Assembly (NCBI GenBank): GCA_907165135.1
Contig: OU015568.1
Location: 4,898,001-4,962,000, forward strand
Length of the DNA stretch: 64,000 nt
Direction of reading: 5' to 3'
Origin: Oikopleura dioica
Lineage: Eukaryota > Animalia > Chordata
Made by a program: the position numbers and the translations under genes. This document shows positions 29,176-64,000 of the stretch, piece after piece (the stretch's first letter is position 1; each line of letters opens with the position of its first letter). The notes under the pieces were generated by a model. The model saw only the letters and a list, made by a program, of their open reading frames with translations, was not told the DNA's origin and made no database searches.

Positions 29176-29204
29176 TTCTCTAGTGCTCTGGTATGCAGTT
29201 AGCT

Positions 29205-29241
29205 AGAATGAATTCGATTGTTAAGTTTCCTTCTTTTTATA
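29205..29241 (-). promoter_or_regulatory. TATA box + Inr of the minus-strand lectin gene
   Basis: TATAAAA about 32 nt upstream of TCATTCT; the same arrangement is conserved upstream of the paralog at 41223. Confidence 0.6.
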
Positions 29242-38500: not shown

Positions 38501-39115
38501 GTGCCTTCTTTTCATGTTCCTTTAGGTTGGTGGATTCGAATGCAACTGCCGACGAGGTTTCTTCGGTGACGGATTCTCTTGCTCTTCCGATGCTTCTACC
38601 GCCCCAACATCTCTCGATGATGGCAAATCTGCCGGCAAGATCAAGACAAAGAAGGCCAACGTTGGTATGCACAAGGCTAACATGGTCGATGTCCAGGGTG
38701 CTATGCTTACCGCCATCTCCCGAGTAAGTTTCTAGAATCGATTCAGAAGTAAAACTGCTTCTCTAGGTCACTGATGGTCGACGAGGAAAGATGACTTTCG
38801 TCAAGCGAGTCCGAGGAATGGCCCAGAAGGCTCTTGCCCGAAGACGAAGAAAGTGCCCACTCCGAGACAACCACGCTGTAAGTAATCTTCTATCAGACAT
38901 TTTCAACTCCAATTTTATGACTCAAACTCATCTTCTAGGCCTCTGCTCTCTCTGCTTTCGAGTCCGCCAGCCAGATCAGCGATGTCAAGGACGCCATCGT
39001 CGCCACCCTTGCCAACCGAACCAACGACACCCCACCCTGCCGCAACATCGAAAAACTCGTTGGCGCCAAGGTCAACAAGGTCTTCAAGCGACTCACCCGA
39101 CACACACGAGCCTAA
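35524..39115 (+). CDS. Secreted CUB + mucin-like + 16 calcium-binding EGF repeats + basic helical tail (fibrillin/fibulin-like repeats; extracellular structural protein)
   Basis: Signal peptide; CUB (CRWRI...FVKILKMDIE...CEWDHL...FKSDAG..GF); Thr/EAAT linker; 16 D-[IV]-[DN]-E-C repeats counted by hand. Four short GT-AG introns keep frame to ...RHTRA*. Confidence 0.9.
36343..36471 (+). repeat. Coding 12-bp repeat (GAAGCCGCTACC, EAAT) within the CUB-EGF gene
   Basis: About ten EAAT-like units, followed by a poly-Thr run. Confidence 0.85.
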
Positions 39116-40159
39116 ATCCTTCCTTCCTCTTTTTCAAAATCAAAATCACTCTCTCCAAAAATGTATAATCTTTAACCACTTCTCTAGCTCCTTAGCCACT
39201 CTCTCTCTTTCTGTATCCATGTCGCTAAGGGTTGCTTCTAGCCCGGTAGTGCCATGTTGCCCCGAAGGCGCTGCTCTTTTAAGGGGCAGCCTCTGCTAAT
39301 CACTCTTATTTTTGGTCCCTTATGATCTGTTTTCACAAGGAGGGGTGCCTAAGTACTTCTTTTGTCCTGTCTCATGACCGTTTTGAAACATCGATAAACG
39401 GGTTAAGCGCAATTTTAACCCGTCGACACGCGATTTGTTTTCACTAAAACACGCGTAAAATGATCGATAAACGCGAGGGCTCGACTTCATTTTCCCCAAT
39501 TCCGGTGCTAGCTTCTCTCTTCTTTATTTCTTCTTTTTGTCGGTGACACAATTCCACAATGCGTTCACCTTCTTGTGGCTTTCGATTTTCAAGAGCCACC
39601 GAATGACCCTTAATCGGCGAAAAAAGGCGAGATCTGAGCGCACGCGAGTGCTCCGCCACGATGAGCTCATCGTTGAGTTTAGAGCATTGTAAATTGTATG
39701 TATATCTTATTCTTCTATGTTTTGCCCTGTGCCAGCAATACACAAAATCAAAGAAATCATGAGTTCGAGGAAAAATTTAACTCAAAAATACTTCCATCGC
39801 ATGGGTTCTCCGGGGTCCTTCAAGAGGTCACATGATTGATTTTTATGATGGATCTGATTCAGATGAGGTCCTCCGGGGTTCCCCGAAGGTTCACGTGATA
39901 AACTTTCTCGGAATAATTACGGTCACATTGCGAAAATAAGAAGAATTCCGCGGAATAGATTTTTCTTCTTTTAGCCTAAAGTATTTCCAGTAAGAGGGTC
40001 CTCCATGCTAGAATTGCACGATTGGTGGTGCTTATTCGGGCTTTTGTTATCGGGGCAGCCATCAAATATCATCGGTATTCACATTATTACATCCCTTATT
40101 CTCTTGATCAAGATAATTTGGGAAATTTATTTAATTTGGATCGAGAGTCTCAACCTTAA

Positions 40160-40892
40160 GGGACCCCTGGAAGCAGCGCCGAGCTCAACTTCACGCGCTC
40201 ACGGTTCTTGTTCGGATAAAGATTTTTACAAGTTTCTTTTTGCAAATCGCATCTGCAATTCATCAGCTTTCTTTTCCAATTTTCAGTTTTCTCTATCATA
40301 AGAAATCAATGAGATAGGGAGAGAAAGAGAAATTAAACTTCAAATGGCATCAAGTCTCGTTATTTATATCTTATTTTCATGAAACCTGCACCATTGAAAA
40401 GCCCATTAAATTCTGCACAGATCTTACTTAATCCGCAAAGCTCAAAGTTTACAAATCGCCCAGGAAGCGCTGATTAAAAGAGGAACTTAGCGCGCTCAGC
40501 TCGGTTGGACGCTCCGATGCAGCTATTTTGGGCTCCCGGGACATGATTCCCGCTGGGCGCGCGCTAAGGTTTCTTGTTTATTTGACCTTTATCGTAATTA
40601 TGAACTGTTTCCCTTTGCGGATTAGGTAAGATCTGTGCAGAATTTAATGGGCTTTTCAATGGTGCAGGTTTCATGAAAATAAAATAAAAATTACGAGACT
40701 TGATGCCATTTGAAGTTTAATTTCTCTTTCTCTCCTATCTCATTGATTTCTTATGATAGAGAAAACTGAAAATTGGAAAAGAAAGCTGATGAATTGCAGA
40801 TACGATTTGCAAAAAGAAACTTGTAAAAATCTTTATCCGAACAAGAACCGTGAGCGCGTGAAGTTGAGCTAGGCGCTGCTTCCAGGGGTCCC
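40160..40892. mobile_element. TTAA-flanked foldback element with ~280-bp arms (Kolobok-like ends)
   Basis: Arms 40160-40440 and 40613-40892 are near-perfect reverse complements starting GGGACCCCTGGAAGC; TTAA on both sides. Confidence 0.85.
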
Positions 40893-41222
40893 TTAAAAAG
40901 TAATGTTGTTTCTAAAACAGGCTCGCATCGCCTAGCTTTGCGTCAATACAATTAATTCACTATCGTGTCACGTGGAAAGCCGCACCTATTTTCAGAATTA
41001 CACAAAAATGCTTCCAATGCCTAGTTTTTGAAAGAAACCTTGCTATGAAGAAATCATTTCGGAGGTGCGCTGAGTCAACCTTTCCGCAAAAAATTGTCTT
41101 GTGGGTAGGCAGTGAAACATGTTTTGATGGCTTGTTTTTACAAACCTTTCTCAAACCGCCTATTTTAAAGCTTGTTTTTAAGAAAAACATGCCGAGTGCG
41201 CGTACCTGGTACTCCACCTGCC

Positions 41223-41256
41223 TATAAAAGGGGGATCTGAACGAGCGAACTCATTC
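41223..41256 (+). promoter_or_regulatory. TATA box + Inr of the plus-strand lectin gene
   Basis: TATAAAA at 41223 and TCATTC with its A at 41253 (30 nt). Confidence 0.6.
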
Positions 41257-41286
41257 TAGCGAACTGAATACCAGGGTACTAGAGAA

Positions 41287-44176
41287 ATGAAAATTTCGCC
41301 TTTTTTGACAATTTTATCGGTCTCCGCCGAGGCTGGGCCCCTTGATTTTTGGACAGAGAGCGATATTTACGCCTACCGAGTTCAAAAGTCGATTCAGAAG
41401 AAGGGTATTGCCAACCGTTTCATCAAGAAATATGATCAAGTTAGAGACGCGATGAGATGGTTCCAGGACGAGGGTGTTTGCGACTCCGTTGTGTCTAGCC
41501 CAAGCTATGAACCGGTCGGTTTCGATGCTGTTTTTGACGCTCGGGCGAGTCCTGGCGCTAACATCGGAAGTCTTGCGGATCTTCTTGATCGCTGGACTCA
41601 GGAGAGTTTGATCAAATTATTGTTTTTCTAGCTTACCAAAAATTGTATAATAATACTTATATTTCTTGAGTATTGCCGAAAACATGAGGCAAAATTTGAT
41701 AAATTTTGAAGTCTTATGCTTGCATCGAAGATCCAGCAATATTTGAGACGATCCAGGACGCTCTTGTCGCTATGAAAAGAGTCGCAAAGTTGAAGATCAA
41801 CAGCGATAAGGATGTTTCCTTCCACATCTCTGACTATCAGATGTCATACGATCAAGCGCTTCTCTACTGCTTCAGCCAAGGCATGTGGCTTGCCGATCCT
41901 GAAGACTACGAGCAGCAAAGAGGCATTGTAAGAAGCATGACGGTCGGAAACTACGTCTGGTTCGACTCTTGGCAAGCGGCTGAAGGGGAGTGCTGGGTGC
42001 AAGAATACTTTGGCGGCGCCGGCCCGGGTGGAAAAGTCAAATATGGAGTGTCCGACGGGCCAAAAGACTGCAACAGCAAGTACTACGCTGCTTGCCAGAG
42101 CGGTCAAACTTACGAAAAATCATGCACCGCCTGGCCAATCGCCAAAATAAGAGTCAACGAGCAAGCAGAAGCTCAAGAATACTGCGAATCCGCTGGTGGA
42201 AACCTTCCATTTTTCAACGATAAAAAGGAGCTTGAGGAATGGCAAAATCGACCAGACCCCCAGCGGGAATGGCTTGGAATCGTCAGAAGCGACGAGTTTA
42301 AAAGCGGATGGGCCAAGGTCACGGGTGAAGAAGCCACTGTTTTTGCATGGGATGGAGGCGAGCCCAATGATGTTGGTGGCGATGAAGACTGCGTTTTCAC
42401 TCGAATTGATGATCCTCTCGTTTGGAACGATGTTCCCTGCACATCGCCGGGTACGGAGATCTTCCGCTGTCGAATCGACTCTACTGTCTACGTCTGGGAA
42501 GATTGTCCTGTTCCTGAGGTGCCTGAGCCACCAACTTGCGTTGATCCATGCGAAGGGAAAGAAATGTGCACTACTTTTGTAGATAGCTGTGAAATCTATC
42601 CAGAAAAGGACAATGTCGTCGGGACAATCTCGCCAACATCGAAGTACTACAAAATCTCATTTGACTTCAAGTGCACGGACCAGGTTGATCCAGAACTGAC
42701 TGTACCATCAGCGAACGTACTTCGATTGGATACCCTGGAACCGGGCGCTGCGTACATACCCAGACAACCTCTCTACTTAGAAGTCGGAACTTATCGAGAT
42801 GACCCGCTTTCATACTGGGTTTACGGCAACGCTGTCTCACAAGAATACTCATCCGATCTGATTGATGTTTTGGTCAGTAAAAATACGCCGTGTACAACAG
42901 AATGGGACTCTTTCACTCTCGAACGAAGTACAGTCGATGGCGTGAATTCAAGATCTACAATGACAAGACACTCTGATGGCGCTCTTCTTTTCGATTACAC
43001 CCAACCAACAGCCGACGTTCAAGAAATGCCACCAGTTCTCTACGCTCGCGTTAGTTCAAACATTTACGAACCTTCACGACTCTACCCAGTCAGAAACTAC
43101 TACTATGAAGAATTACCTGAACCAGTGACCGGTGCTTTTGCAATGTATTCGGCAAGCTATGCAAGTGGAATAAACCACAATGTGCTGTTGTCTCTCGACG
43201 GAGAAAAATTGGTGATCTACCTTCGGCGGGTTTCCGCGCTCACGCAATACCTGCAATTATTCGCGGAACAGTTTACATCTTCGGGGATACGAGAAATATC
43301 CAGATGCTGAATATAATAAGGTCTGTTTATGAATCCGACAGCAAAAAATAACAAAAATAATCAAATATCTTTCGGTGCTTATTATGTTAGTTTTATCACA
43401 AATTGTGGGCTAAGAATATTTTTGAGATTGCAAAGCTTTTGGGCGATGAGTTTGTTGACGTTCCACTTACCTTACCAATGAGAACAAGAACCTGGGGCCA
43501 ATCGATGACAATCAACGACAATACCGAAGGTTTCTATTTTCATTTCATTCATTTTCATATATTCTGATTTAGCTTTAATTTGTTCCCTGGGAACTTGTCA
43601 AATCTTTGACGAGGAGTCTCTTGCTACTACTCCTTCTTACCAATTTGGCCATTACTATGGCTGCATGGCCGAATATCAAGGCAATCCAACACTTGTTGGT
43701 GGTTTCATCAACGGCGGAGAACCCGAGTCATTTATTGACGGAAATTGGGCAGCTCTTCCACGCCCTTCCGATCCATCGTAAGAAAATTGAATGATTTAAA
43801 AAATTAATTAACAATTCCTTTTTAAAGGGTCGAAAAGGTGTATTCAAGCGCTTGTTTTGGCCTCGATGATGGTTCATTTTTGAAGGTCGGTGGCAAACCT
43901 TCGGGTGCAGACTTTGTGAAATCTGTCTGGTTGCTTAGAGAAGGAACATGGTCACAATTGGCCGACTTGCCAGAGGTAACTTTCCAAAATATTTTCTACC
44001 TATGAAGTTAATTTTAGGAATTTGATTCTTATTACAATATGCGAATCGGAAGCTTGTACTTCATGGCTGGTAACGGATACACTGGCGGTAAGATCCGTCG
44101 AATGGAAATCGAAGACAACACCATCGTTTCAACTGAATCAATCTATGATTCATACGGAATGCTTATCCCTAACTAA
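41287..44176 (+). CDS. Paralog of the 26717-29175 gene: signal + helical module + C-type lectin + extra ~200-aa domain + kelch-like propeller
   Basis: N-terminal half is nearly identical to the minus-strand copy. Kelch-like exons at 43.2-44.2 kb (AIIRGTVYIFG, TLVGG, LKVGG). Two single-base losses in homopolymers (~43205, ~43284) are needed to keep frame, so this is either assembly error or a young pseudogene. Confidence 0.7.
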
Positions 44177-44298
44177 AAAGTTCTCACCAAACTATCCTGT
44201 CGAAAATTTGCCGCCATCAAAATTTATTTCAGTACTGATCGTATCTTATTCTTTTGTCTTGCCCTGTGCTAGCAATACACATAATTAAACGGCAACTA

Positions 44299-44713
44299 CT
44301 ATTTTCAGGAGTTTGAAAAATTTGGATTAAAATTTTTGTAGTCAATTTTCATTTTAATTTCCAAAGTGGAGATTTTTTTCTGGAACTGTTTCTCAAAAAA
44401 TTTCATCGATTCCATTTGGACCAAAAATAGCACCTTGTTCAGACCGATTTTTAAGGGTGTTAGAGTAATAATTAAGGGTATCTGACTGGGGCAAAATAAA
44501 GCCCAGGCCCCGAGCCAGGTTTTTACCGGGGTTTAAGGGGCCGGGAGGCCCTTAACACCCTTGAAAATGGGTTTGAACAAGGTGTTATTTTTGGTCCAAA
44601 TGGAATCGATGAAATTTTTGAGAAACAGTTCCAGAAAAATCTCCACTTTTGAAATTAAAATGAAAATTGACTACAAAAATTTTAATCCAAATTTTTCAAA
44701 CTCCTGAAAATAG
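44299..44713. mobile_element. Foldback element, ~155-bp arms
   Basis: CTATTTTCAGGAGTTTG... / ...CAAACTCCTGAAAATAG; GC-rich core shared with the neighbouring element. Confidence 0.75.
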
Positions 44714-44784
44714 GAGCAGCCTAATTAAACAGATTATTGAGTTTTTATTTGCGTTAGAAAAAATGACGATTTTTCGGCTATGGT

Positions 44785-45089
44785 CAATTTCAGGAGTTAA
44801 GAAGATTTGGAGTAAGCTAAAAGGAGCAACTTTATTTTCCGGAAATACTCCAAATCGGAGCAAAATTTCAAAGCCGATTTTAAGGGTGTTGCAGAAATGT
44901 TAAAGGGTATCTGAATAGCTCAAAAGAAAGCCCGGGCCCCGAGGCGCGTTTTCGCCGGGTTTTGAAAGGGCCGGGAGGCCCTTAACACCATTATAATCGA
45001 CTTTGAAATTTTGCTCCAATTTGGAGTATTTCCGGAAAATAAAGTTGCTCCTTTTAGCTTACTCCAAATCTTCTTAACTCCAAAAATTG
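44785..45089. mobile_element. Foldback element, ~100-bp arms, same core as 44299
   Basis: GGAGTTAAGAAGATTTGGAG... / ...CTCCAAATCTTCTTAACTCC; core ends GGGCCGGGAGGCCCTTAACACC. Confidence 0.75.
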
Positions 45090-48605: not shown

Positions 48606-50856
48606 CTTGATTTTTAAATTTAAGGGCTTGACGGCCCTTCGGGCCGTCTCAGCCCCGTTTCTTGATTTTTAAATTTAAGGGGCTTGACGGCCCTTCGGGC
48701 CGTCTCAGCCCCGTTTCTTGATTTTTAAATTTAAGGGGCTTGACGGCCCTTCGGGCCGTCTCAGCCCCGTTTCTTGATTTTTAAATTTAAGGGGCTTGAA
48801 GGCCCTTCGGGCCGTCTCAGCCCCGTTTCTTGATTTTTAAATTTAAGGGCTTGACGGCCCTTCGGGCCGTCTCAGCCCCGTTTCTTGATTTTTAAATTTA
48901 AGGGCTTGACGGCCCTTCGGGCCGTCTCAGCCCCGTTTCTTGATTTTTAAATTTAAGGGCTTGACGGCCCTTCGGGCCGTCTCAGCCCCGTTTCTTGATT
49001 TTTAAATTTAAGGGCTTGACGGCCCTTCGGGCCGTCTCAGCCCCGTTTCTTGATTTTAAATTTAAGGGCTTGACGGCCCTTCGGGCCGTCTCAGCCCCGT
49101 TTCTTGATTTTTAAATTTAAGGGGCTTGAAGGCCCTTCGGGCCGTCTCAGCCCCGTTTCTTGATTTTTAAATTTAAGGGCTTGACGGCCCTTCGGGCCGT
49201 CTCAGCCCCGTTTCTTGATTTTTAAATTTAAAGGGGCTTGACGGCCCTTCGGGCCGTCTCAGCCCCGTTTCTTGATTTTTAAATTTAAGGGGCTTGACGG
49301 CCCTTCGGGCCGTCTCAGCCCCGTTTCTTGATTTTTAAATTTAAGGGGCTTGCCGGCCCTTCGGGCCGTCTCAGCCCCGTTTCTTGATTTTTAAATTTAA
49401 GGGGCTTGAAGGCCCTTCGGGCCGTCTCAGCCCCGTTTCTTGATTTTTAAATTTAAGGGGCTTGACGGCCCTTCGGGCCGTCTCAGCCCCGTTTCTTGAT
49501 TTTTAAATTTAAGGGGCTTGAAGGCCCTTCGGGCCGTCTCAGCCCCGTTTCTTGATTTTTAAATTTAAGGGCTTGACGGCCCTTCGGGCCGTCTCAGCCC
49601 CGTTTCTTGATTTTTAAATTTAAGGGCTTGACGGCCCTTCGGGCCGTCTCAGCCCCGTTTCTTGATTTTTAAATTTAAGGGCTTGACGGCCCTTCGGGCC
49701 GTCTCAGCCCCGTTTCTTGATTTTTAAATTTAAGGGGCTTGACGGCCCTTCGGGCCGTCTCAGCCCCGTTTCTTGATTTTTAAATTTAAGGGCTTGACGG
49801 CCCTTCGGGCCGTCTCAGCCCCGTTTCTTGATTTTTAAATTTAAGGGGCTTGAAGGCCCTTCGGGCCGTCTCAGCCCCGTTTCTTGATTTTTAAATTTAA
49901 GGGCTTGACGGCCCTTCGGGCCGTCTCAGCCCCGTTTCTTGATTTTTAAATTTAAAGGGGCTTGACGGCCCTTCGGGCCGTCTCAGCCCCGTTTCTTGAT
50001 TTTTAAATTTAAGGGCTTGACGGCCCTTCGGGCCGTCTCAGCCCCGTTTCTTGATTTTTAAATTTAAGGGGCTTGCCGGCCCTTCGGGCCGTCTCAGCCC
50101 CGTTTCTTGATTTTTAAATTTAAGGGGCTTGAAGGCCCTTCGGGCCGTCTCAGCCCCGTTTCTTGATTTTTAAATTTAAGGGGCTTGACGGCCCTTCGGG
50201 CCGTCTCAGCCCCGTTTCTTGATTTTTAAATTTAAGGGGCTTGACGGCCCTTCGGGCCGTCTCAGCCCCGTTTCTTGATTTTTAAATTTAAGGGGCTTGA
50301 CGGCCCTTCGGGCCGTCTCAGCCCCGTTTCTTGATTTTTAAATTTAAGGGGCTTGAAGGCCCTTCGGGCCGTCTCAGCCCCGTTTCTTGATTTTTAAATT
50401 TAAGGGGCTTGACGGCCCTTCGGGCCGTCTCAGCCCCGTTTCTTGATTTTTAAATTTAAGGGGCTTGACGGCCCTTCGGGCCGTCTCAGCCCCGTTTCTT
50501 GATTTTTAAATTTAAGGGGCTTGACGGCCCTTCGGGCCGTCTCAGCCCCGTTTCTTGATTTTTAAATTTAAGGGCTTGACGGCCCTTCGGGCCGTCTCAG
50601 CCCCGTTTCTTGATTTTTAAATTTAAGGGCTTGACGGCCCTTCGGGCCGTCTCAGCCCCGTTTCTTGATTTTTAAATTTAAGGGGCTTGACGGCCCTTCG
50701 GGCCGTCTCAGCCCCGTTTCTTGATTTTTAAATTTAAGGGCTTGACGGCCCTTCGGGCCGTCTCAGCCCCGTTTCTTGATTTTTAAATTTAAGGGCTTGA
50801 CGGCCCTTCGGGCCGTCTCAGCCCCGTTTCTTGATTTTTAAATTTAAGGGGCTTGA
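48606..50856. repeat. Tandem array, ~40 copies of a 55-57-bp hairpin unit
   Basis: Unit TTGACGGCCCTTCGGGCCGTCTCAGCCCCGTTTCTTGATTTTTAAATTTAAGGG(G)C. Contains an 8-bp stem GACGGCCC/GGGCCGTC and the palindrome TTAAATTTAA. No unique spacers. Confidence 0.97.
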
Positions 50857-52109
50857 TAAAGGCGTGGAACTGTGAGTTGATCAATCTCAGTTATGTCCCC
50901 AACCCCACCCACACCCATCTTTCTTAAAATTCCAATTATCCTTGTTTTTATCTTAATTATGGTTTTTATTTTAAATTATGAAAATTATTTTCTTTATTTT
51001 TAATAAATATAATTTATGGCTCGAAAAAATCTTCTTTGAGCATATTATTTAGTCCTCTATGTATGCTTAGGCTAAGTTTTATAAATTTGAAAAAAATTTT
51101 TCCTACACCCTGGGTTTTGCGTGCTCACCCCGTCTCATGCGCTCCCTGCGTGATCGCGCGCCGCGCGAGTAGTTATATATATGGTAGGGTATCTGGTGTT
51201 GCAGGCTGTCGCTGAATGGCTAACTCCGTTTGGCGCGCAGTTTGAAAATTACCTGCTTTCAATTGCCTGCTAAGATCCCTCTGGGCAAAATACAATACAC
51301 GAGTGTGGTAAGTTTCAAAGTGTGGTAAATATATTTGTTAGTGTAGTAAATAAATGTTAGTTGCAGAGTAAATAATTGCACATAATCAGGTGATCATAAT
51401 AACTTGTCGTTCTGGGTAAAGTTCTTGCGCACCAAGCCAGAAGCCTCTCATGTAATCGTACAGTTCTTTTCCTTGAAGTCTTGTTCGATCTTTTACACAT
51501 AATATCCAAATCGGTGGTGTTGGGCTATAAGGCATTTCTTCAAGTTTTGAATAATCTAAATAAAATTTAAACAACAATAATAACATGTTTATAAACCTTT
51601 TCGCAAAAGCTCATCTCTGCTGATTTCTGTAAGTGAAGACATTCTAAAAAAACCAATGACAAAATTTTTCAGAGTGAGCTCCACCCTGCAAAAAGCCGGT
51701 ATAATTACGACTGCCGCAGGCTACAAAAATCAACAAGCGGTTTCGATGTAAGTTTTTATTCTTAATAAACACCAGTTAATTGTTTTTAGTTTCCATTCGA
51801 GTTTCAAGTTCTTTGTTGATTTCAGCTACGAGTTCTTCAATGGTCATTTGATTGCTTGGTTTGGGGAGTGGTGCTTTCTCCAGCCTTATTTTCTTTGCTT
51901 TTGAAGGTTGAATCATTTCTCTTCGTTTTATTCTGAAAAAATATAAAAATCAAAAAGCTGTTGCTTCTATCGCTGCAAAAATGCGAATGAGCTTACATTA
52001 TAAAATTCTCCCGTAGCCAATTCTTCTTTAATCATTTCCACGTAGCACGGCCAGAATTCAATTCGCTGTTTCCTAGAATTAACATGTTGCAAAACACGTG
52101 TGCATGATT

Positions 52110-52652
52110 CTAATTATTACAGTTCTCGTTCAAAGTATTCAATTGATTTTGTAAGCTCATCATAAGGGCAGTCACTGACCTCGACATTCTGTTTACAGAG
52201 TAAATTGTTTTTAAATAAATTTCAAATGGCAAACATAACAACGCATGTCGAAAAAACAATTTCACTCTGGACAGAATGCCGAGCCCAATGCAATCATCGC
52301 AATATCCTTGATCTGCAATTATGGGAATCGCTTTTGTCTTGAATTTGCAAATGGCGCTATCGCATTTGTCATCTTTCAATATTTGAATTGTATGAAAATC
52401 TCTCGGAGTAACTAAATCCTCAGCATAGCAAAGCGCATCTTCAGGATCAATTTCACGAGCTTTTTGTTCCAGTTCTTGGCGTGAGAGCATTTTAAATTCA
52501 TAGTTAAGCTCTCTCTCGCGCTTTTCAATGTCAGATTTCTGAAGTCTCGTTCTTGATCCAAAGCAACTCGTCATTGCGCTATATCGCTGCTTATTGTAGA
52601 AATGATCCATCCATTTGTTGTAATCCATCTTTTTCTCGCCGTCTTCTTGCAT
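52110..52652 (-). CDS. Hypothetical protein with a Cys cluster (CDSAIC...CDDC); may splice to further exons at 52072-51837
   Basis: Stop-free 180-codon ORF from the ATG at 52652 in very AT-rich DNA; phase of the downstream exons not resolved. Confidence 0.5.
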   Translation of the reverse strand: MQEDGEKKMDYNKWMDHFYNKQRYSAMTSCFGSRTRLQKSDIEKRERELNYEFKMLSRQELEQKAREIDPEDALCYAEDLVTPRDFHTIQILKDDKCDSAICKFKTKAIPIIADQGYCDDCIGLGILSRVKLFFRHALLCLPFEIYLKTIYSVNRMSRSVTALMMSLQNQLNTLNENCNN

Positions 52653-54949
52653 TATCAATTTTTTGAATAAAAATATGCGCTTTTGCACAAATTTATTTCC
52701 AGTTTTATTTAACACCACACGGCGGCGTGTTTGCCGCTTGTCATTGGTGGCGCTGTTCTTGGCTCAAATTAGTCGAGTGTTGATGATTATACAATGACCA
52801 TACGATCTATCTACTTTTTCCATTTTAAGCCAATAGATTCGTGTCGTCACGTATATTTACATCTTTGTGCAATTGTCGAATGGAGCTCATGTTCATCATT
52901 CTAGCCGGTTAGGACGCCTTTTTTTATTTTTAAAATAAACGTCCTTTCCAACTTTATGATAAATGACAAGTAATGTTTTGGCGATTGTAAGTGGCAATTT
53001 AAGAACTTTCAAGCCCGACTTTTTGCCAAGAATGCTTTCAAAAAGTAATGCTTGAACAGGTCCTATAATTGCACACTTTTCATCTCTCTGTATGTCTCTC
53101 GCTCTCTCTCTCTCTCTCGTCGGGAGTTTTTACAAGTCGATAATTTTAATCATGTTCAAGTTAGCCTATGCCGATTCTCATTATTATTGTTGTTGTTGTT
53201 GTTGTTGTTTGAGTCTCAGTCTTAGGGCTAACAAAAACAAAATAAAAATGCGCAAATTGTAGAATTTTCCCTACATTAAAGCGTGGCATCTAATCTTCAA
53301 CTTGCATTATCCTTTTTGAAAGCAGAAGTATTACTGCCGCGCCATAATGCGGTGATGTGATACCGGTCGATAGTATTCAAAAGCAGACTGCACGAGAGTT
53401 CTGTAAATAAATTTACATAGAACTATCGAGCAGATTGTTTTTTAAATGTTTTGTTTGTAGCTTGTTGACAATAATAACCAAATAAAACGCTAAAACAACG
53501 AATGTTTATCATTCCTGTGTCTTCGCGCATTATTTAGCTCTATCGTCGAGAGAGGACGACGCAGTCTCTTTTTGTCGATTGTGATAATATGGTGAGTTGT
53601 GCTCTGTCCACTTTATACATAGATTGATAGTATTGTTTAAAGTTTTCTTTACACAAGTCGCGTTATTTTCTGTTTCACTTTGTAGACTGGTCAATGAAAG
53701 TGATCAAAGTATAGCAAGCACAGAGTCTATACCAAATTTTATTAGATAGTAAGAACCTTGCGCATACTATGCCTTGACTTGAACTAAAATATCTAATGGT
53801 GTTTGTGAATGAAATCACATGTCGACGCGCTCTTTTTAAGCACTTTTTCGGGCACTATCAGCGATGGCGCTAGAGGTTTACAAATTTTTGCTGATGTCGC
53901 GCTTGTTTTTCGCTCGTCTTTAAAAGAAAAATTTCTTTCAAGATATGTAAAATAAAATAATGTTAAGAGAGTAAATCCCTTTTAGGGTCGGCAACTCTAA
54001 GTAAATGTAAAACGCTGTTCTTTAATTAAAATAACAGTTTAGAATGAACTTTGTTGTTATGTTTGTAAAAGACTTTTTCTTCTGGCAGTAGTGGGTTTTT
54101 AAAAAGTGACAAGGCGCGTTCTATTTCGCCAATCGGCGTTGTATATATATAACCCAGTATCTCAACAAAATCAAAAATGCATTTCACCTTCAAAAAAGTA
54201 TGTACATTCAACATCTTTGACAGAGCGTATGATGGGTAGTATCTGACGCAGCTGACATTGATGTCCTTTTAAAAAACCTGTTTTATTTTATTTGTGCTAT
54301 TTATTCAATTGTCAGTTAAGGAAGTCATGGAATTAAGCAAAATGAGGATATAGGAACCGTAGGAAATCTTTCTCGACAACAATGTAAAATAATGCGGGCA
54401 CCAGTATTTTATTGCGTTGTCTTTTTTCGCACTGTTATTTGAATTAAACAAGCAGCTATCGGCTGTGATTACTTATAGTTGTCGACCTTAAAAAATTATT
54501 TTGCTGTGCGGCGAATGGTTTGTTTTGAAAGAATTACGTGTAAGTCTTTAAAATGTTTTATGAAAAAGTTTTATGCCAATTTTAAGCTCGACTGACGACG
54601 AAGATGATGAAATGCCACAAAATATAAAAATGCAAAGAAATGAAGGCAAAATTGCAGAAATAAATGAAATGAATGTCAAATATTTCTGAAGTACAAAATG
54701 TTCACAACAATTTCGCGAAGCTCCTTATACTGGGTTACGACGTTGTTTATTATTTTTAATAAAGAAATCAAAATATAACGCGTTTTCAATCATGTTGTTT
54801 ACATCTTTGCAAAATTGACAAAAAATCTCTCGAACGTGTAAAAAATTTTCTAGAACTAGTGTTGTTGTAAGGCAAAAAAGCCATTTTTCGTCAGTTTCTC
54901 AAAGTCTTTTGGAGAAGCAAGACGTCTTTTTGTCAATTTTTTTGAAGCC

Positions 54950-55878
54950 ATGTCCGAGCAACCGGTAAGTTAGCGGGGTTTTGAAAAAAAAAGTTGAAAA
55001 TTTTATTCTAGTCCCCAGCTGGGTCCTTGATCAACATGGTCTCCCCAACTCGTAGCGCTAATCCTCACCCGGAGGAGTTTCTCCACCATAATTGGGAAGA
55101 TGTCGACGTCACCCAATTCACCGAGTACGCCCCTGTTGGCAACCTTGGCGATGCTGAACTTGTTTCAGTTAGTAGCTTTGGTTCCAACTTGGGATCGCGC
55201 GATCTCCTAGAGATCGACGAAGTCGATGATGAGGAGGCGGATCGAATCTCCCGCAACATTGTGGGTGATGACTCCGTCGACCCCACCCAGTTCCCCGCTG
55301 ACCACCCCTTCTTCGGCGATGGACCACCTCGTCACCAAGACCCCGAGGAGCAAGCTGAAATCGAGCGAGTCGAGAGGGAAGCGATCGCTCGACGACGACA
55401 AAAAGCCGCCTCCGCCAAGCTGATCAAGGGTGTCACCTTGTCCAAGCACCCCCACCGATTCCCCGAGCTTCTTCGATACGCTGATGGAGCGTCTTTTTCG
55501 CAGTGGTTGTGGCGACCATACGACTGCAGACTCTCCATGGAGGACCTCTTAAAAGAGGTGCCATTCGACGAAAACGACGAATGTAAGTTTTTTTGTTATC
55601 AAAAATATAAATTAATAATTTTTATTATTTTAGACCGAGGTCTTGAAGGCCGAGACACCGAAACCGCGATCATGCTCCTCAAGGCATTCTTTCGGGGCAT
55701 GGTCCGTGAGACGACCCATCTGGAGAATGAGCTCAACCTGGGCGCTTTTGGTGTCCACTTGGAATCCTCCAAGTGCACCATCCCCTTGATGAATGTCCAG
55801 TTCGGCCACATTCCCGAAGTTGGCAAGAAGGGCTCTATTCGACGAGGCCGAATCTTCAAAAGACAGCGACGAAACTAA
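54950..55878 (+). CDS. Orphan gene 1 of cassette: acidic N-half, basic C-tail; 3 exons
   Basis: GT-AG introns 54965-55011 and 55583-55633 keep frame; AATAAA at ~55957. Confidence 0.75.
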
Positions 55879-56389
55879 TGAAAGAAAATCAAATTTATTT
55901 GATTTTCTTTTCAAAAAAAAGAAACCACTTTTAGTGGTCCATTTATTCTGTTAAAAAATAAAATTTCTTTGAAATTTTCAAAAAATACAAGGATTGGTAA
56001 TGATTCATAATCATATCATCCTTTGACCTCGTGTGCATTTGATAAAGCGGTTTGATTGGTAGTTAATCGGAAAAATGAGTAGTTTGGTTCAAAGTCACTT
56101 TTTTCAAAACAAGTGACTTCTAGAAAAGATTGGTTTTGTCGCAGCGGCGGAGGATTTTCCAGATTTGGGTTTTCGCTCGGGATATTTCGAGAATTGAATA
56201 AAGCGCGGAAAAAACGGTTTATTATACAAAAACTTATCATTTAAAAGAGAATTTACTCAGAAGAAAAAGTAAAGAGAATTTTTCAATCAAGCTGATAAAT
56301 TTTACCTTCGCTGTGAGAAATTGCCACACACTTCCGTTTTTGATACTATGTTTTACAACTTTCTCACCGGGCGTTATCTTTTCAGAGGC

Positions 56390-57635
56390 ATGGTGGTCAT
56401 TTTTAGCAAACTACGAAAGAATCAAACAGCGCCAGAAGTGATTACGCCACCACCGCCGTATCGAATGTGTTGCCCACCAGGAAGCCATCGCCATCGCCGA
56501 GAAGCAGAGCGCTTTTCGTAAGTGAGCTTATTTACGAGCAAGAGAAATTATTTTTTTCTAGCGATTTCTCGATTACCACGAGACGTCCACGACCAACTAT
56601 CTTGATGCGATCCGAAGCTGCGACCGGTGCTGCGACCACTCCCGCCACCTCCACCACCACCACTGCTACACGCATGATGGGTAACAAGGTAATCAAAAGT
56701 TTTTTGTTCAATCTATTGAATTTTAATAGGCGCCAACTACCCACCGATTGGCATCTTGTGAGCAATTCACTACCAAGGTCACTTTCTTCTTGCTGGGCAG
56801 CTTCTTTGCGCTCTCCGTTTACTTGTTGATTGCGAGCTTTCAACATGTTTGCAATTGGCCGACGGTAAAGACTTCTTCGAAAGTAGCAGATCCAAGGATC
56901 GTTCGAGATAGACGCGAAGGTAGGAATTTGAAGCTTTTATTGTTCTATTATTTGTCAATAGGCGCTGAAGAAGAAATTGCCATGGTTGATCTTGGTGGTC
57001 TGGCTGCTGCTGCTGCTGCTGCTTCTGGCGATTACGAAGGCAGCGTTGAGGGAAGTGGCGGCGACGCACCGGCTGCTGCTGCTTCGGCGGCGGTGGTAAC
57101 TGTTGAAGTGGAAGGCTCCTCCGATAGCACTGATCCGTGGCCTTCTGACTGCGAGGACCCATTGTGCTCCTATTGCCGCGGCTATTGCTGTAAGTGCTGT
57201 TTTTTAAAATTTTTTTTAAATAAGCCATAATAGACAAGATCAAACCTGCCGCTGCCAACCGGGATACGCCAACCAACAACGCCCAAGATGACGATTCAAA
57301 GGTAAACCATTCGCCGGATTTGGAATTGAAACTTCCAAAGTTGGAGATCACCGAGAACCAGAGCGATCAATTCCCCACAATCAACCACGATCCTGCGGCT
57401 GCAACCGAAGAGAAGCCTGCCACCATTTTGCCGACGCCAACCACCAACATGGCCAGCGGCTCTTCCACTTCCACTCTCGACTATGAATTCGTCGACAGCA
57501 TCTTCAACGATTTCACCTCAGACGGATCCGCTGTTATTCTCGAGACTCAACTCGGCGACAAAGTCGAATACGGTAAGTTTTGTAAAAAAAATTTTTCAAG
57601 TTGTAAAATAAATAATAGAGACTGACGCTGTCTAA
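56390..57635 (+). CDS. Orphan gene 2: type II membrane glycoprotein-like, furin-type RDRR site, Cys cluster; 7 exons
   Basis: Six GT-AG introns all keep frame. TM VTFFLLGSFFALSVYLLIASF; CEDPLCSYCRGYC; Ser/Thr/Ala-rich segments. Confidence 0.7.
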
Positions 57636-57847
57636 TGAAGACGACAACGAAAAGATGCCGCCACCACCAAGACCTGCTAACTTCCTTCTCCCACCCTTCA
57701 AATTGAAACTGTTGTTATCGCTTTTTGCTCTCCTTGAACTTTTCTTGTACCCTGACCTGACTTTTTATTAAACCATCTTTAGCGCGCGCGCGCGGCGGCG
57801 GCAATTAGCTCCCCTAAAACATAAATTTTATTTGTTTTTTTTTCAGA

Positions 57848-58283
57848 ATGGATAAAGCAATTTTAGACTTTTTCTTCAATTCATTCTACAAAAAACTCAA
57901 GATCACGGTAAGCAATTTAGCGGCAGCAGCAGCAGTAGCAAAATTGACAAAATTTTTAGCTCTCACCAATTGTGGAAAACGATCAATCGATGAAGGACAA
58001 TCAATTACCCTGTTTTACTTTACGGCTGTTTGAAACTCATGCATATGAGGTAAAATTATGATAAAAAACAAGAAAATTTAATAAAAAATAGATTGACAAC
58101 GTCAATACGCGACTCGCTGTCATGTGGATCGAAGATGATGATAGATTTAAATCGTGGCGTGTTGAGAATTGGGTTCAATCTCAGCAAATGATGACTTTGA
58201 GCGCGATCAAAATCACTGGCAGACCCAAGTTTTCACCGCGATATGATTTGGAGTGGGAATTGGAGTTTCTTCGTGATGCTTAA
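57848..58283 (+). CDS. Orphan gene 3: 113-aa protein; 3 exons
   Basis: Two phase-0 GT-AG introns join MDKAILDFFF...KIT | LSPIV...HAYE | IDNVN...FLRDA*. Confidence 0.7.
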
Positions 58284-58405
58284 TCTGTTTGTCAATCGCT
58301 GTTCAAAAATGAGGATGATGTCAACTGCCAATTTTGTTTAAATTTTATTATTTTTAGACTTTTGAAGCATTTACGTGATGGGTCGTGTCGCGACGAACGT
58401 AAAAA

Positions 58406-59437
58406 ATGAGTTTGTCGCTCTCACAAAGTAAGCCAAGCTCACAAAGATATAAACAAACATTTTTGTCTAGCGATTATATCGACAAGAAGATCAACAAGCA
58501 CGCCAAAAAAGTCGCTTCCAAAGCGTACTCGATGGCCAACAACTACCAGAGTGGCAAGCGACGTCGTGGATCGCCTCAATACTTTCGTCGCCGCTCGCCC
58601 AGTATGCGCCAAAGTTTTCGAACTCCTAAAACAACTTTTTGTAGATGGGTATTACTATGATCAGCAGCGTCTTTCACCTTCTTCTCCAGAGGTCAAGAAG
58701 CAAAAACTGGCCAAAAAGTGCAAAAACACGGCGATTCTTTTTGCTGAAAAGACAAAAGAAATCATTCGCGGTGAGTCAAATTTTGTCAAATTTTAGTTAT
58801 TAACAAATAATTTAGAAATTGCTTCTGCGCCGCCGAAAATGGCAACAGCGTTTTCTTTTGGCCCGTATGAGGCCAGATTCGCGCTCTGCCCAAAAAACAC
58901 CAGTGAGGCGGATGCGATTCCATCCCTGCGTGAAATCACTCATGCAATTGAGACTCAGGATGGTGATCGGCCGATGATCATTCCAAACAAGGGGATTTTT
59001 TTCCCGTTTCATCTTTTCACTACGCGAAAAATGAACATGGAGCCCCTCTTGCCAGCAATTGGAGAATCATCCGAGTATCATGCGGCGGCAAATACTCGTC
59101 GATCAATTACCTACCCTCCAGGTAAGCACTTTTACTTGTTACTAAGTTTGTAACTTTATTAGCTAACAACAACTCCGTCGAGGATGATCAAGAGGTGGCT
59201 CACGAGGAGGTGATGATGGTGGAGACGTTGCCGCTGCCGAAAATCAGACACCTCTCGTCTTCGGACAATGACTCGGAAATCGAGTTCAACAATCCATTGC
59301 TCCGCCGCCGCTCGATCGCCGCTCCACCCGCTCGACCACCTCCACCTGCTGCTGCTGCTGCTGCTGCTGGCAAGACACCAATTCAGCGAGAGCAGCGCCG
59401 CCGATCTGCAATGAAAAGCCGCTCTGCAAGAAAGTAA
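58406..59437 (+). CDS. Orphan gene 4: basic, partly disordered protein; 4 exons
   Basis: Three phase-1 GT-AG introns keep frame; ends in Pro/Ala runs and RRRSAMKSRSARK. Confidence 0.7.
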
Positions 59438-59679
59438 GAATCGGCTAGCAACTACAAACTGCCAAACTGGGTCTTTTCTAAATTTTTCAAATTGCTATTA
59501 AACTGCTTGCTGTCCCATCGCCCCAACCAGCCTTGCCCCTAACCAACTCTTACCGCTTTTAACCATCTGCTTATCAATTGACTAACCCAATTAATCATTC
59601 ATTTATGGCAAAACACGCATTTCATCTCAGTGTCTCAATTGTTTTTATCTTTGGTAATTTTTAGACAGTTGAAAATAAA

Positions 59680-62636
59680 ATGGGGCGCCCGATTCGTCGC
59701 GCGCACCTTGAGTCTTCGGAAAGCGATGCTGATTCGACTCCTTCAATCAGCAATCTAATTTCGCCCGGATCTTTTGCACTCGCTTTACCAACATCGTCGA
59801 GTGACTCTGAAGCGGAGAAAACTTCTCCGCGCCGATCAAAAACACCCTCTCCGCGTCGATCAAAAACACCATCTCCGCGTCGAGCAAAAACACCATCTCC
59901 GCGCCGAGCAAAAACAACTTCTCCGCGCCGAGCTTCTACGCCTCGAAAAACGCCTCGAAAAACGCCTCGCCGAAATCCTTCGCCTCCATTTAAAAAAATC
60001 ATTGCTGGCCTCTCTTCCTCGATTGTACGCTCTAGTGGTGGTGGTGGTGGTGGTGGTGGCGGTGGCACCAAGGTTTGAAGTTTGAAAAAAGGTTGAAACT
60101 TATTAGAATTTTAGCAATTGAGCATTTCGGATTATATCCATAAAAAACCAGCGACTACGTCGATTCCAGGTGTGGTCCCACTCTCCTCTTCTTCATCTTG
60201 TGGCGAGGAACAACAAAGCCAAAAACAACAAGGCCTGGTTCAATTTTTCTTTTATTTTTGATAAATATACGCGTTTTGAACTCTTTGAAGATAAGAAAAA
60301 AAAGTCTAAAAAGAAGAAGGGTAAAAAAAGTGCACCACCACCGCCGCCAATGTCGCCGCCGCCACCATTTGAAACTCTGCCAGAAGTGAGCAACAACAAA
60401 AAGAAGAAGAAGAAAAGTCGCAAAAAAACGCCGCTTGTTGTTCCACCGGCAATCCGCGATCTTTCGAAGCAAAAAAAGCCAGCTGCTCGATCATCGCCGC
60501 CAAAGCTCTCACCAATGAAGGATCCTGCCAGAGATATTATTGAGCTCTCATCAGAGACTTCCGACGCCGAAGAAGGCGCCACCACCGCCGCCGCCGCCGC
60601 CGCCAAGCAGAGCGAGATTTTCAAGCGACCGTACGAGAGCGAGAGCGAGGGCGAATTGACGATAATTGATGAGGAAACTCCGCAGCCTGTCAAGTCTCGA
60701 AAAACCAAGGCGAAAAATCCGCCGAAAAAAAGAAAAACTACTCCCGCGGCGGCGGCGGTGGCAAAAGCTGCGAAAAAACAATCTGCGAAAAAAGGCGAAA
60801 AACGAGACGATACTCCTCGCCCTCGCCGATGCAAACCAGTTCCACCGAATTGCATCTCTCAGATGGACTACAATCGCGCGCGATTGTTTCAAAAGGGTGA
60901 TCCAGAATTACCTTCCAATGACGCTGTCGGAAAGCCAACTGAGCCGCGAATCCTCCCCGTTGTCGATAAAAAGTCGTCTGTTCCTCGCGATCAAATGCCC
61001 GATTTGGAGAACACGATGACAATTGATCAGGGCGAATTCCCTCTCACCTTGCCAAAAGATTCCGATGTTGATAAAGAAGTCGGCGAGCTTCTTCGACGAA
61101 CAGATGCGCTGGAAATAACCGACAGCGAAGACGAGTCGACTGGCGAGATAAAGAAAAAAATTGAAGCGTTCAAAAAGGAAGCGCCGGTTTGGCCAATGAA
61201 TCGCTACGCCCTTCGAAAAGCTTTCAAATTGGCATACAATGCTAAATTTGGAGTGCGACCGTCTATGGCCGACTGCCGAATTGGTGCTTGGTTGCAGCGA
61301 ATCGCCCGCAAGTACCATCATGCAAAGCGATACAGCCAGCCTCTGAACGAAGCCGAGTACCGTATTTTCATTGAAAATGTGAGCAAAGGCACTTCTCTGG
61401 AAAGCTTCTACAATGAGCCGGGGCTAGAAGTTGGTCCGCGCCTTGTCTGGGATAGAGTTGGCAGCTTCTTCCCCATTTTCGCCATCGATGGATTCATCCA
61501 TTACTACATCAAAGAACTCAAAATTTGGGTGAGTTTGGTTATCAAAAAACAAATAATAATCGAGTTTACAAGGTTCACTTTGAAAAACGCGGTTGGCGAC
61601 TAATGTCAATCACGGACAAAGATCTTGGTCACCCGGCGATTCTTTTGGCCACTCTCAACGAAATGCCCCCGATGGTCTTCCCTTGGCCCTTTACGTCGGC
61701 TGATGATCCGTACGCCAAGGAAAAGTCGACCATTCTACTTGTACTTGGCTTCATTCCTTTGGGCACTTATCCGGAATACGCGCTCGAAGCTGTCGACATA
61801 AGCAAAGAGGTTTGTGCACAAGTACACACACTCTCTTATCATAATTGTTTTCAAGGTTTTACAGACGCTTTGCATTGAAGAGCAAATCACTCAACCGCCC
61901 TCAGCCGACCAGATGATTGCTCTCAACGAGCGGCTTGAAAACAAGTGCTACAGGATGGTCAATACGGCCTTCAAGATGGATCTCCTGGGCCCCGAAGATG
62001 GACTAACGGACGAGGAAATTCTAGAGGTGCGATACAACGGCCTCATCCTCAAAATGGATGAGATGCTTGGCGGCTCAAAGCCAGCAACAACACTCCCTCT
62101 TAAAAACCGCGACCCATTCGAGGCAATCGTTGCTGCTCTTCCGCGGGTTTTTACCGAGAATAAAGACGTCTGGCCCCAAAAAATCTTCATCAAAACGCTC
62201 ATTTATGCCAACTCTTGCCAAAAATTCACCGAAAATCCTGCGATGATGCAGCTTGTAAGTAAAATAATTATTTTTCATTTTTAAAATAATTGTTTTGTAG
62301 TTTGGCGTTGGCGAAATTTTGCCCGCACCAGTTGTCGCTTGGCAACAGTGGCTCAACTATCCGCTGCTCGACATCAACATGAGCACTGGGGAGGCGAAGC
62401 GAGCTCAAGTCGAATTGGAAAAATTTGTCGCCAATTACAAGCCGATGCCGGCTTCCAACGCCGTTCCCACCACCTCCTCCTCCTCCGCCGCCGCCGGAGA
62501 CGAAGTCTCAAGCAAGAAAAAGAGCCGACGACTCACCCTTGAACAGATGGAAGATGCAGCAACATCGTACGGGCTTCATGATTCTGATGATGAACAAATT
62601 TCTTCTGTTCCTCGTGCAAACATGCCCCAGAATTAG
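59680..62636 (+). CDS. Orphan gene 5: ~880-aa protein, SPRR/Lys/Pro-rich disordered N-half, unknown globular C-half; 6 exons
   Basis: Four GT-AG introns and one GC-AG intron (60233-60290) join ORFs 59680, 60170, 61525, 61814 and 62319 in frame. Confidence 0.75.
59824..59940 (+). repeat. Coding 24-bp repeat (SPRR[SA]KT[PT])
   Basis: Five TCTCCGCGYCGA-initiated units. Confidence 0.85.
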
Positions 62637-62681
62637 AAACGTTATTTTTTGCTTTTATTTAGATAGTTGAAAAGGGGGATC

Positions 62682-64000
62682 ATGAGTCGCCGCCGCCGCC
62701 GCTGCTACCAACCACCAATAAGTCGCTTGTTCATCATTATCATAATGTGCATGTATGCACCAGTGGTGCGCAAAAAATATCTTGCCAATGCATCGATGAT
62801 CTTGATAACATCGTCTGATAATTGGTACCCCTTCCGATCATGCTTTGATTCGCACCCGTACGTTGCCCATGACGATTTTTGCAAGTTTGAACATGATCAT
62901 TGTGCCGCGGTCTTGTCGCCAACTTCGACGACTACTTCGACCACTTCGACTAGTTTGACCACGACGAGTTCGACCACGACTAGTTCGACCACGACTAGGT
63001 CGACGACTAGTTCGACTACGACGACAAGTTCGACTACGACGACAAGTTCAATGGAATCCACCGCCGCCGCTGCTGACGACGATCTCATAACTTGTCGGCA
63101 AGAAAACGCAACAAAATCTGAAAACAACGACGACGGCGCAAAAGTTCTTCGACCACCAACAGCCAGTCAGCCAGTTATGCCACAAGTGACAACAGTAAAG
63201 ACAATGCCCAGGATTCGCAAAAAGAAGAAAGATGAAGAAATAAAATCGAAAAAAAAATTTTCGTCGACCAGGTAACACTCGAAACAAGGGTGCGTTTTGG
63301 AGTTATGTGGTATTTGGATGCATGGTGGCAGTTGGTTTCATGGTATCAAAAACTTACATGTGGTGTTTTTTGTTAAAAAAACGCGAGTTTTGCCACCCCG
63401 CGTTTCATACCACCCCGCATTTCAAAGCACACCTAGTTTCAAAACACACGTTGAATTACAAAATTTTTTTTTTGAATTTTTTTTTTAGCATTTTCTTCAT
63501 CATTCTGGCGTCGCTTATTGGAACAATTTTGGCTTGTTGTGGAATAGCTGCGGCTGTGCTGAAATGCAAACACCGAGACGAATCTTGCTGCTCGATTTGG
63601 CGACACGTGTTCTATACTCTACAACATTGGATCGAGGCATTTTTCAACGCTCTATTTGATCTTGTTCGATGTCGAAATCCGGTGCAAGAATACAGAAGAC
63701 GTCAAGAATATTTTGACAATCTTCTTTATCAAAATAATCGTCGTCGTCGAAGCTCATTTTTTCGTAAGTTTTTTGCAAAAAAAAGGGAATTATATGATTG
63801 TTAGGTCGAAGGCAGCATTATGAGCGTCAACATTTGTTACCGCCTCACTTGGAAGCCGCCTTTCAAGCTCAACATGCGTATCACCAAGAAATGCGAGACT
63901 TGGCTGAAGAAGGCGACGCCGCTCCCGCCGCTGCTCCTCCGAGACGCTCTTTTTTTCGACGCATTTTTAATCGGCTAAGACCAAGACAAAGAGACAACGA
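62682..64000 (+). CDS. Orphan gene 6: membrane glycoprotein-like with a Thr/Ser mucin stalk and Arg-rich tail; runs off window
   Basis: Hydrophobic N-terminal stretch, Cys-containing segment, T/S repeat, TM IFFIILASLIGTILACCGIAAAVL. Internal splice pattern partly uncertain. Confidence 0.6.

Follow-up and report, generated by a model that had tools for sequence, protein, structure and literature searches.

Mavericks, also called Polintons, are the described systems closest to the subject of this report, a probable integrated virus-like element that occupies the last part of a 64,000-nucleotide stretch of the Oikopleura dioica OKI2018_I69 genome (chromosome PAR, OU015568.1, 4,898,001-4,962,000), which we refer to as the window. 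In vertebrates, Maverick ends carry the motifs 5'-(AG)3 and 5'-(AGT)2 with 6-bp target-site duplications, and intact elements consist of eight intronless open reading frames (ORFs) (Barreat and Katzourakis 2021, PMC8097293). Maverick is listed among the repeat classes of O. dioica (PMC5240408), and in the literature searched we found no description of an O. dioica Maverick copy, its ends or its genes. Polinton-like viruses of protists, which are 14-40 kb in size and defined by their capsid genes, occur as many diverged integrated copies and in aquatic metagenomes (PMC12220804, PMC7805220). Teratorn of medaka, a giant mobile unit of 180 kb, is a fusion of a piggyBac transposon and a herpesvirus (PMC10175614).

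We consider it likely that window positions 51168-64000 represent the left arm of a single integrated copy, and that this copy belongs to a family of virus-like O. dioica DNA elements that exceed 30 kb and are related to Mavericks/Polintons. Judged by its sequence, the element has the Maverick end motif (AGT)2 at its 5' end, a protein-primed family B polymerase, here in a sister copy, and two opposite-strand modules that run towards the centre; as in vertebrate Mavericks, there is also an accessory region beside the end, and many diverged copies reside in the genome of an aquatic host (PMC8097293). It departs from the intact vertebrate elements in its size of more than 30 kb, in its intron-bearing genes, and in a large conserved module opposite the polymerase, ~17 kb long, which is made up of orphan genes and in which no integrase, capsid or protease could be recognised. 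Unlike in vertebrate Mavericks, inverted repeats and a 6-bp duplication have so far not been seen in the stretch of the element covered.

The other systems resemble the O. dioica element in part. Polinton-like viruses share its size range, its many diverged integrated copies and its occurrence in aquatic metagenomes, but they have protist hosts, and no capsid gene of the kind that defines them was found in the O. dioica element. Many Polinton-like viruses have no protein-primed polymerase. Adenoviruses have such a polymerase, short reiterated genome ends and nuclear expression with host splicing, all of which are likenesses to the element; they differ from it in not being integrated elements, and adenovirus virion proteins were not detected in it. 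Teratorn is alike in being a giant mobile unit of an aquatic chordate that joins a mobility system to a large virus-type gene set, whereas neither a transposase nor a herpes-type gene was found here.

The left end of the element is defined to the base. A preliminary description of the window had noted an abrupt start at 51168 directly after CGCGCG, and this start is real: the boundary of homology coincides with it, and five copies agree on it as the end of the element. The loci compared were PAR (L001), which is identical to window 50350-64000 with zero mismatches and extends a further 8.6 kb to window-equivalent 72636, together with loci on chr1 (L002), XSR (L003) and chr2 (L004) and on a contig of Norwegian O. 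dioica (L005). All five copies start with AGTAGT(T)ATA, 3.1-4.2 kb upstream of a g9792-like gene that is the first on the plus strand, at position 51168 on PAR, 5979 of the chr1 locus, 2096 of the chr2 locus (145 nt beyond the host gene LRWD1), 988 of the XSR locus and 660 of the Norwegian locus. AGTAGT, corresponding to one of the two vertebrate Maverick end motifs, thereby stands precisely where homology begins in each of the five copies. Homology between PAR and chr1 begins no more than 10 nt from 51168, and the 50 bases before it are only 36% identical, which is the random level. The terminal 10-mer has a single exact occurrence, at the matching place and strand, in four of the five loci, with a one-base-shorter form in the fifth; its chance expectation is 0.06 per 64 kb. 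The longer terminal sequence, AGTAGTTATATATATGGTAGGG, occurs nowhere else on either strand of the window or of the 8.6 kb beyond it, even with up to three mismatches allowed.

The upstream flanks of the five copies are mutually unrelated, and the six bases preceding the ends are CGCGCG (PAR), CGCAGC, ATCGAC, AGTGTA and CTTATC. Segmental duplications would have arbitrary, differing breakpoints, whereas here the breakpoint falls on the same base in all five copies; these copies combine one base-exact breakpoint with unrelated flanks, a pattern that independent segmental duplications would not produce. Inside the terminus the sequences have drifted far apart. With 170 nt of terminal sequence as a blastn query, the chr1 copy is the sole match, and the distant copies share with the PAR terminus only the first ~10 bases and one box. 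The XSR locus additionally contains a second AGTAGTATAT at 736, 252 nt upstream of the aligned end (988), which may be the remnant of another end.

Downstream of this end the copies are collinear. Window 51158-65710 aligns with L002 5965-20738 at 74-81% nucleotide identity over 14.5 kb, up to the end of the sequence compared, and the XSR, chr2 and Norwegian loci are collinear with PAR and with each other over their full length in the same orientation. Against PAR, the protein anchors in order number 16 of 17 for XSR (linked E 3e-55), 21 of 24 for chr2 (linked E 1e-49) and 19 of 21 for the Norwegian locus (linked E 8e-83). The region is therefore multi-copy, with five collinear copies compared, rather than the single-copy sequence that would have spoken against a mobile element. 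Gene order in the plus-strand block is kept in every copy, down to 25-40% protein identity. The preliminary description had suggested that the region may be the cargo arm of a Maverick-like element or endogenous virus. Variable cargo, however, is not what the block is: every copy has kept it, and by its sequence it behaves as a core module, so that the word 'cargo' probably does not suit it.

One gene family of the block is that of P0001, the product of g9795. A HMMER search of all proteins with P0001 returned 36 relatives, of which all the named ones are from O. dioica (XSR.g17016, chr2.g7969, PAR.g12696, chr1.g2766, PAR.g11538, YSR.g17188 and Norwegian CBY11167) and the remainder are marine metagenome fragments. 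The family has at least eight annotated Okinawan loci, on PAR, chr1, chr2, XSR and YSR, and one Norwegian locus. Among the metagenome fragments are sequences 46-51% identical to P0001, nearer than most of the genomic paralogues. The chr2 model g7969, with 2369 aa in 19 exons and introns that reach ~2 kb, resembles a fusion of several element genes made by the gene predictor.

The plus-strand module spans ~17 kb and contains at least eight spliced orphan genes, which encode membrane or mucin-like proteins, basic repeat proteins and the P0001 family. It ends at window-equivalent 72126, and a minus-strand gene has its 3' end at ~72322, so that the two lie tail to tail; the same layout is seen in the chr2 and Norwegian copies, with two opposite-strand modules that point to the centre. 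In the chr2 copy, the first gene of the minus-strand module encodes 323 aa and is 58% identical (E 4e-41) to the ORF at the far end of L001 on PAR and ~60% identical to an ORF at the end of the Norwegian locus. Only 44 nt from this gene lies a polymerase gene (L004 24049-27893, minus strand) of the protein-primed family B (PF03175, E 6.9e-16, 58.6 bits against a cut-off of 25.8). Its product matches a 1022-aa metagenome polymerase in the N-terminal part at 47% identity and has a YADTDS motif near the C-terminus, in the last ORF piece. The gap of 44 nt leaves no room for the end of a second element between the polymerase and the 323-aa gene. Three or four ORF pieces make up the polymerase reading frame, and the two or three interruptions may be frameshifts or else short introns of the type found in adjacent genes. 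Beyond the polymerase, two further large minus-strand ORFs have no recognisable relatives. A word search with the polymerase returned only two annotated polymerases of the Okinawan proteome, chr2.g7966 and XSR.g14647, and two metagenome proteins. The earlier statement that no core gene is visible holds for the PAR sequence covered, as no PF03175 polymerase was found in the window and the 8.6 kb beyond, which reach only the first gene of the minus-strand module; it does not hold for the element, since the collinear chr2 sister copy has the polymerase.

The genes of the PAR arm have host-type introns, as the preliminary description proposed. With ambiguous boundary bases placed, the two introns of g9792 and the three of g9795 are all GT-AG and 44-47 nt long, the typical intron size of O. 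dioica (PMC5240408), and they belong to annotated models, in contrast to the intronless ORFs of the intact vertebrate type of Maverick. Three intron positions fall in the same alignment columns of P0001 (PAR) and its paralogues P0004 (XSR) and P0008 (chr2), at ~36% identity. Between PAR and chr1 the ratio of nonsynonymous to synonymous divergence (dN/dS), calculated per exon, is 0.04-0.31, with a synonymous divergence (dS) of 0.58-0.89. A frame-by-frame scan detected constraint also on the unannotated ORFs at 51386-52763, 62667-63275 and 63307-63804, and more weakly on the SPRR-type ORF. Non-coding parts of the two copies (window 51168-60349 against L002) are 72-84% identical, above the level of synonymous sites (proportion of synonymous differences, pS, 0.40-0.52), and this excess similarity suggests, at the level of sequence comparison, constraint on non-coding DNA or the presence of further unannotated genes.

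Table 1 Features of the element in the window and its continuation on PAR. Positions are those of the window; window-equivalent positions lie beyond its end.
Feature	Position	Strand	Description
Left terminus	51168..51189	+	AGTAGTTATATATATGGTAGGG, directly after cgcgcgccgcgcg; begins (AGT)2, then TATA; preceding six bases CGCGCG
ATTGG-type box	51213..51221	+	~45 nt inside the terminus; kept in 5/5 copies (L002-L005 at matching places) amid diverged DNA
Element part within the window (probable left arm)	51168..64000	.	continues to at least window-equivalent 72636 in L001
Unannotated terminus-adjacent gene, several ORF pieces	51386..52763	-	conserved in other copies; no Pfam match
g9792 (P0002), 276 aa, 2 introns	54950..55878	+	acidic orphan; opens the plus-strand module
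g9793, 444 aa	56390..58283	+	orphan; one hydrophobic membrane-type segment; no Pfam match
g9794, 295 aa	58378..59437	+	orphan; exon-frame dN/dS 0.12-0.29
Unannotated ORF, 132 aa	59680..60078	+	basic Ser/Pro/Arg repeat protein (SPRR-type), 24-nt repeat unit
g9795 (P0001), 716 aa, 3 introns of 44-46 nt	60350..62636	+	Lys-rich disordered N-terminal part; conserved domain ~residues 220-670
Unannotated ORF, 202 aa	62667..63275	+	N-terminal hydrophobic segment; Ser/Thr-rich (32%) repeat, mucin-like; dN/dS 0.32
Unannotated ORF, 165 aa	63307..63804	+	Cys-rich; strong membrane-type segment; dN/dS 0.29
g9796, 455 aa	63891..66096 (window-equivalent; 63891..64000 in the window)	+	annotated model
Following annotated model, 873 aa	69285..72126 (window-equivalent)	+	end of the plus-strand module

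The annotated genes from 51 kb onward are on the plus strand throughout and have no Pfam matches on record (Table 1). In agreement with the earlier impression that no recognisable host gene follows 51168, none of the ~36 ORFs and annotated products of the region and its continuation scored above threshold for any Pfam family. The description of membrane glycoprotein-like genes is borne out by hydrophobic segments and Ser/Thr-rich stretches that fit this label for three ORFs, and the basic SPRR protein was correctly recognised; its ORF has a weak Cornifin match under threshold and is weakly constrained (dN/dS 0.42). The g9792 product has a single relative that we could find, chr1.g2856, at 79% identity; compared with its chr1 paralogue P0003 it is 79-84% identical with a dN/dS of 0.10-0.27. 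Stretches homologous to g9794 occur in the XSR, chr2 and Norwegian copies. The minus-strand gene beside the terminus has a dN/dS of 0.25-0.39 against the chr1 copy and matches a minus-strand ORF at the equivalent place in the Norwegian copy at 30% identity (E 7e-10); its longest piece meets three in-frame stops in the chr1 counterpart, by an alignment-based count. Beyond the window, L001 17430-19211 (window-equivalent 67779-69560) holds a 593-aa ORF that lies mostly outside annotated models and is homologous to a 708-aa ORF at the equivalent place in the Norwegian copy (E 3e-10).

An AlphaFold model of P0001 built with 30 relatives has a mean predicted local distance difference test (pLDDT) score of 58.7, with a confident core at approximately residues 365-610, and is predicted to be mostly helical with one small sheet, and not a jelly roll. 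A Foldseek search with this model returned no significant match, the best being E 0.42 in the PDB and E 0.022 among viral structures (probability <=0.15); adenovirus protein IIIa appears among the non-significant fold matches only (E 0.04, probability 0.07). The model of P0002 was unusable, with a pLDDT of 36.6.

Several results count against placing the PAR arm in a Maverick-related element. The inverted end is absent within 21.5 kb of the left end on PAR, within 30.7 kb on chr2 and within ~21 kb on XSR and in the Norwegian locus. These searches covered the window and all loci with the exact 22-mer allowing 3 mismatches, the 10-mer and a degenerate form, and the sole degenerate match, at window 4389, is within chance. 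The downstream inverted end that the preliminary description called for was thus not recovered within 21.5 kb of the PAR end, and neither inverted repeats nor a target-site duplication have been seen. Integrase, packaging ATPase, protease and capsid were not found by Pfam or PDB sequence searches among the visible ORFs and products of the five loci. The Pfam scans covered the window and the five loci (~55 ORFs and 13 annotated proteins), with spliced models searched exon by exon and joined products used for the annotated ones only (P0001-P0004, P0008, P0009), and the polymerase alone matched; the core-gene searches proposed earlier therefore yielded one of the expected proteins, in the chr2 copy, and none of the other four. 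Retroviral-type (rve) integrase had no match in the ORFs and annotated products of the five loci, PDB sequence searches returned no relatives for the three large chr2 ORFs, the P0001-family profile or two polymerase sequences, and visual inspection of the two ORFs that make up the 323-aa gene beside the chr2 polymerase revealed no Walker A motif. Nor is there an annotated polymerase on PAR or chr1 by a word search over the 339-1078 aa range. The link to a polymerase comes from a single copy, that on chr2. No near-identical copies were seen, the closest pair being PAR and chr1 with a dS of ~0.7, and old host genes likewise show conserved introns and purifying selection. The proposal of a large Maverick-like element or endogenous virus is accordingly upheld in part: one arm of a multi-copy unit with a defined (AGT)2 end, introns and a polymerase in a sister copy is present, and the inverted end and the integrase, capsid, ATPase and protease genes were not found. 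Other classes of element were also considered. The region has no long direct or inverted repeats and no reverse transcriptase, Rep, helicase or transposase domains, and we rejected a long terminal repeat retrotransposon, a Helitron and a cut-and-paste transposon, as long terminal repeats, reverse transcriptase, Rep-helicase and transposase are all missing from it.

It is possible, if in our view doubtful, that the roughly eight loci are ancient insertions of an element that can no longer move and has been retained or co-opted by the host, that their spliced genes have become host genes, and that the PAR polymerase may have been lost. This would fit the deep divergence of all copies (25-51% protein identity, and the dS of even the closest pair), the purifying selection on both the PAR and chr1 members, whose non-coding DNA is more alike than their synonymous sites, and the conserved intron positions. 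It would also fit the presence of two annotated polymerases against at least eight P0001-family loci and the division of the chr2 polymerase frame into pieces. However, the selection recorded between copies could date from a time when both lineages still multiplied, the interruptions of the polymerase may be short introns, and the metagenome fragments that are nearer to P0001 than most paralogues point to unsampled lineages. A more conservative explanation takes the region as an ordinary host gene cluster spread by segmental duplication, with the chr2 polymerase as an unrelated insertion. The window contains no recognised mobile-element protein, the deposited gene models, for which AUGUSTUS was run with intron and exon hints from RNA-seq (PMC8008620), are host-like, and the tiny GT-AG introns are typical of the O. 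dioica genome. We nevertheless regard this as very improbable in view of the base-exact common left breakpoint, the conserved end motif and the unrelated flanks in five copies, and of the 44 nt that separate the polymerase from a 323-aa gene also present in the PAR and Norwegian copies. An order of eight genes kept at 25-40% identity would moreover be odd, since the O. dioica genome is known for its scrambled gene order (PMC11067885).

The element could instead be polymerase-bearing and virus-like without being a strict Maverick; it would then form a lineage of its own, whose 17 kb spliced module takes the place of the integrase/capsid module or which has other means of packaging or movement. 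We think this unlikely, although the polymerase is the only Maverick protein found in up to 30.7 kb of one copy, the element is larger than 30 kb, its genes are interrupted by introns, in contrast to the reported absence of introns from intact vertebrate Mavericks, and the modelled P0001 structure matches no known fold. Against it, the element shares with Mavericks both its (AGT)2 end and its pair of converging modules, the right arm beyond the stretch covered could harbour integrase or capsid genes, and diverged capsid proteins often escape searches by sequence alone. A further, tentative suggestion is that the copies might represent an undescribed lineage of giant (>30 kb) polymerase-bearing endogenous viruses of larvaceans, in which the 17 kb intron-bearing module replaces, or is an unrecognisably diverged form of, the capsid/integrase module, and which is still under selection. 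Such a lineage may still circulate, because related fragments occur in marine metagenomes; if it exists, dozens of O. dioica 'orphan host genes' would be element genes.

If the arm does belong to a Maverick/Polinton-related family, as we consider likely, the element would replicate, or would once have replicated, in double-stranded DNA form, with its own polymerase starting from the ends and the short reiterated end serving protein-primed initiation. The DNA would then integrate into chromosomes, and its genes would undergo nuclear transcription and splicing by the host machinery. The copies on PAR and chr1 would be two old, diverged members of one sub-lineage, whose genes and much of whose non-coding DNA would have been kept under purifying selection. 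A Maverick-type element in the closest relatives of vertebrates could then exceed 30 kb and could carry a large, conserved and spliced gene set under purifying selection, unlike the intact vertebrate Mavericks reported. At least eight loci, each with at least eight gene models, are now annotated as ordinary orphan genes of a very compact genome, and if these are element genes, gene counts, orphan-gene statistics and inter-lineage comparisons of gene order should treat the loci separately. From the conserved intron positions one could gauge directly how long elements of this kind persist as nuclear DNA.

The flanking part of the window contains several other repeats and genes. Miniature inverted-repeat transposable element (MITE)-like palindromic repeats occupy window 1500-32400, with cores CCTGA[CG]TCAG at 16 sites and AAGCCGCGTAGCGGCTT at 11, and no such core is found past 32.4 kb in the window or in the 8.6 kb beyond. 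The core motifs are thus absent from 51168 onward, as the preliminary description had it, but they cease at 32.4 kb already and not at 48 kb, and because of this we rejected their absence as a marker of the element boundary. A 56-bp satellite at window 48606-50856 (40.5 copies, 98% matches), whose unit includes a G+C-rich palindrome, ends ~310 nt before the left end of the element. It was considered as a part of the element and rejected: it is absent at the chr1 copy, which makes it flank rather than element, and the flanking DNA is different at every copy.

Rfam and tRNA scans of the whole window gave no matches. A C-type lectin gene (PF00059) forms an inverted duplication at window 27957-29353 and 41104-42532, with arms that are 90-96% complementary and bracket ~12 kb holding a gene with many calcium-binding epidermal growth factor (EGF) domains (35524-38569). 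EGF-domain genes lie a few kb upstream of both the chr1 copy (L002 858-2896) and the PAR copy (the gene just named), which is probably a coincidence, because no DNA similarity was found between the flanks. Two long hairpins, at window 40156-40896 (arms of 123-163 nt, 97-99% complementary) and 44291-45089 (arms of 67-106 nt, 94-95% complementary), are probably further foldback or MITE-type elements.

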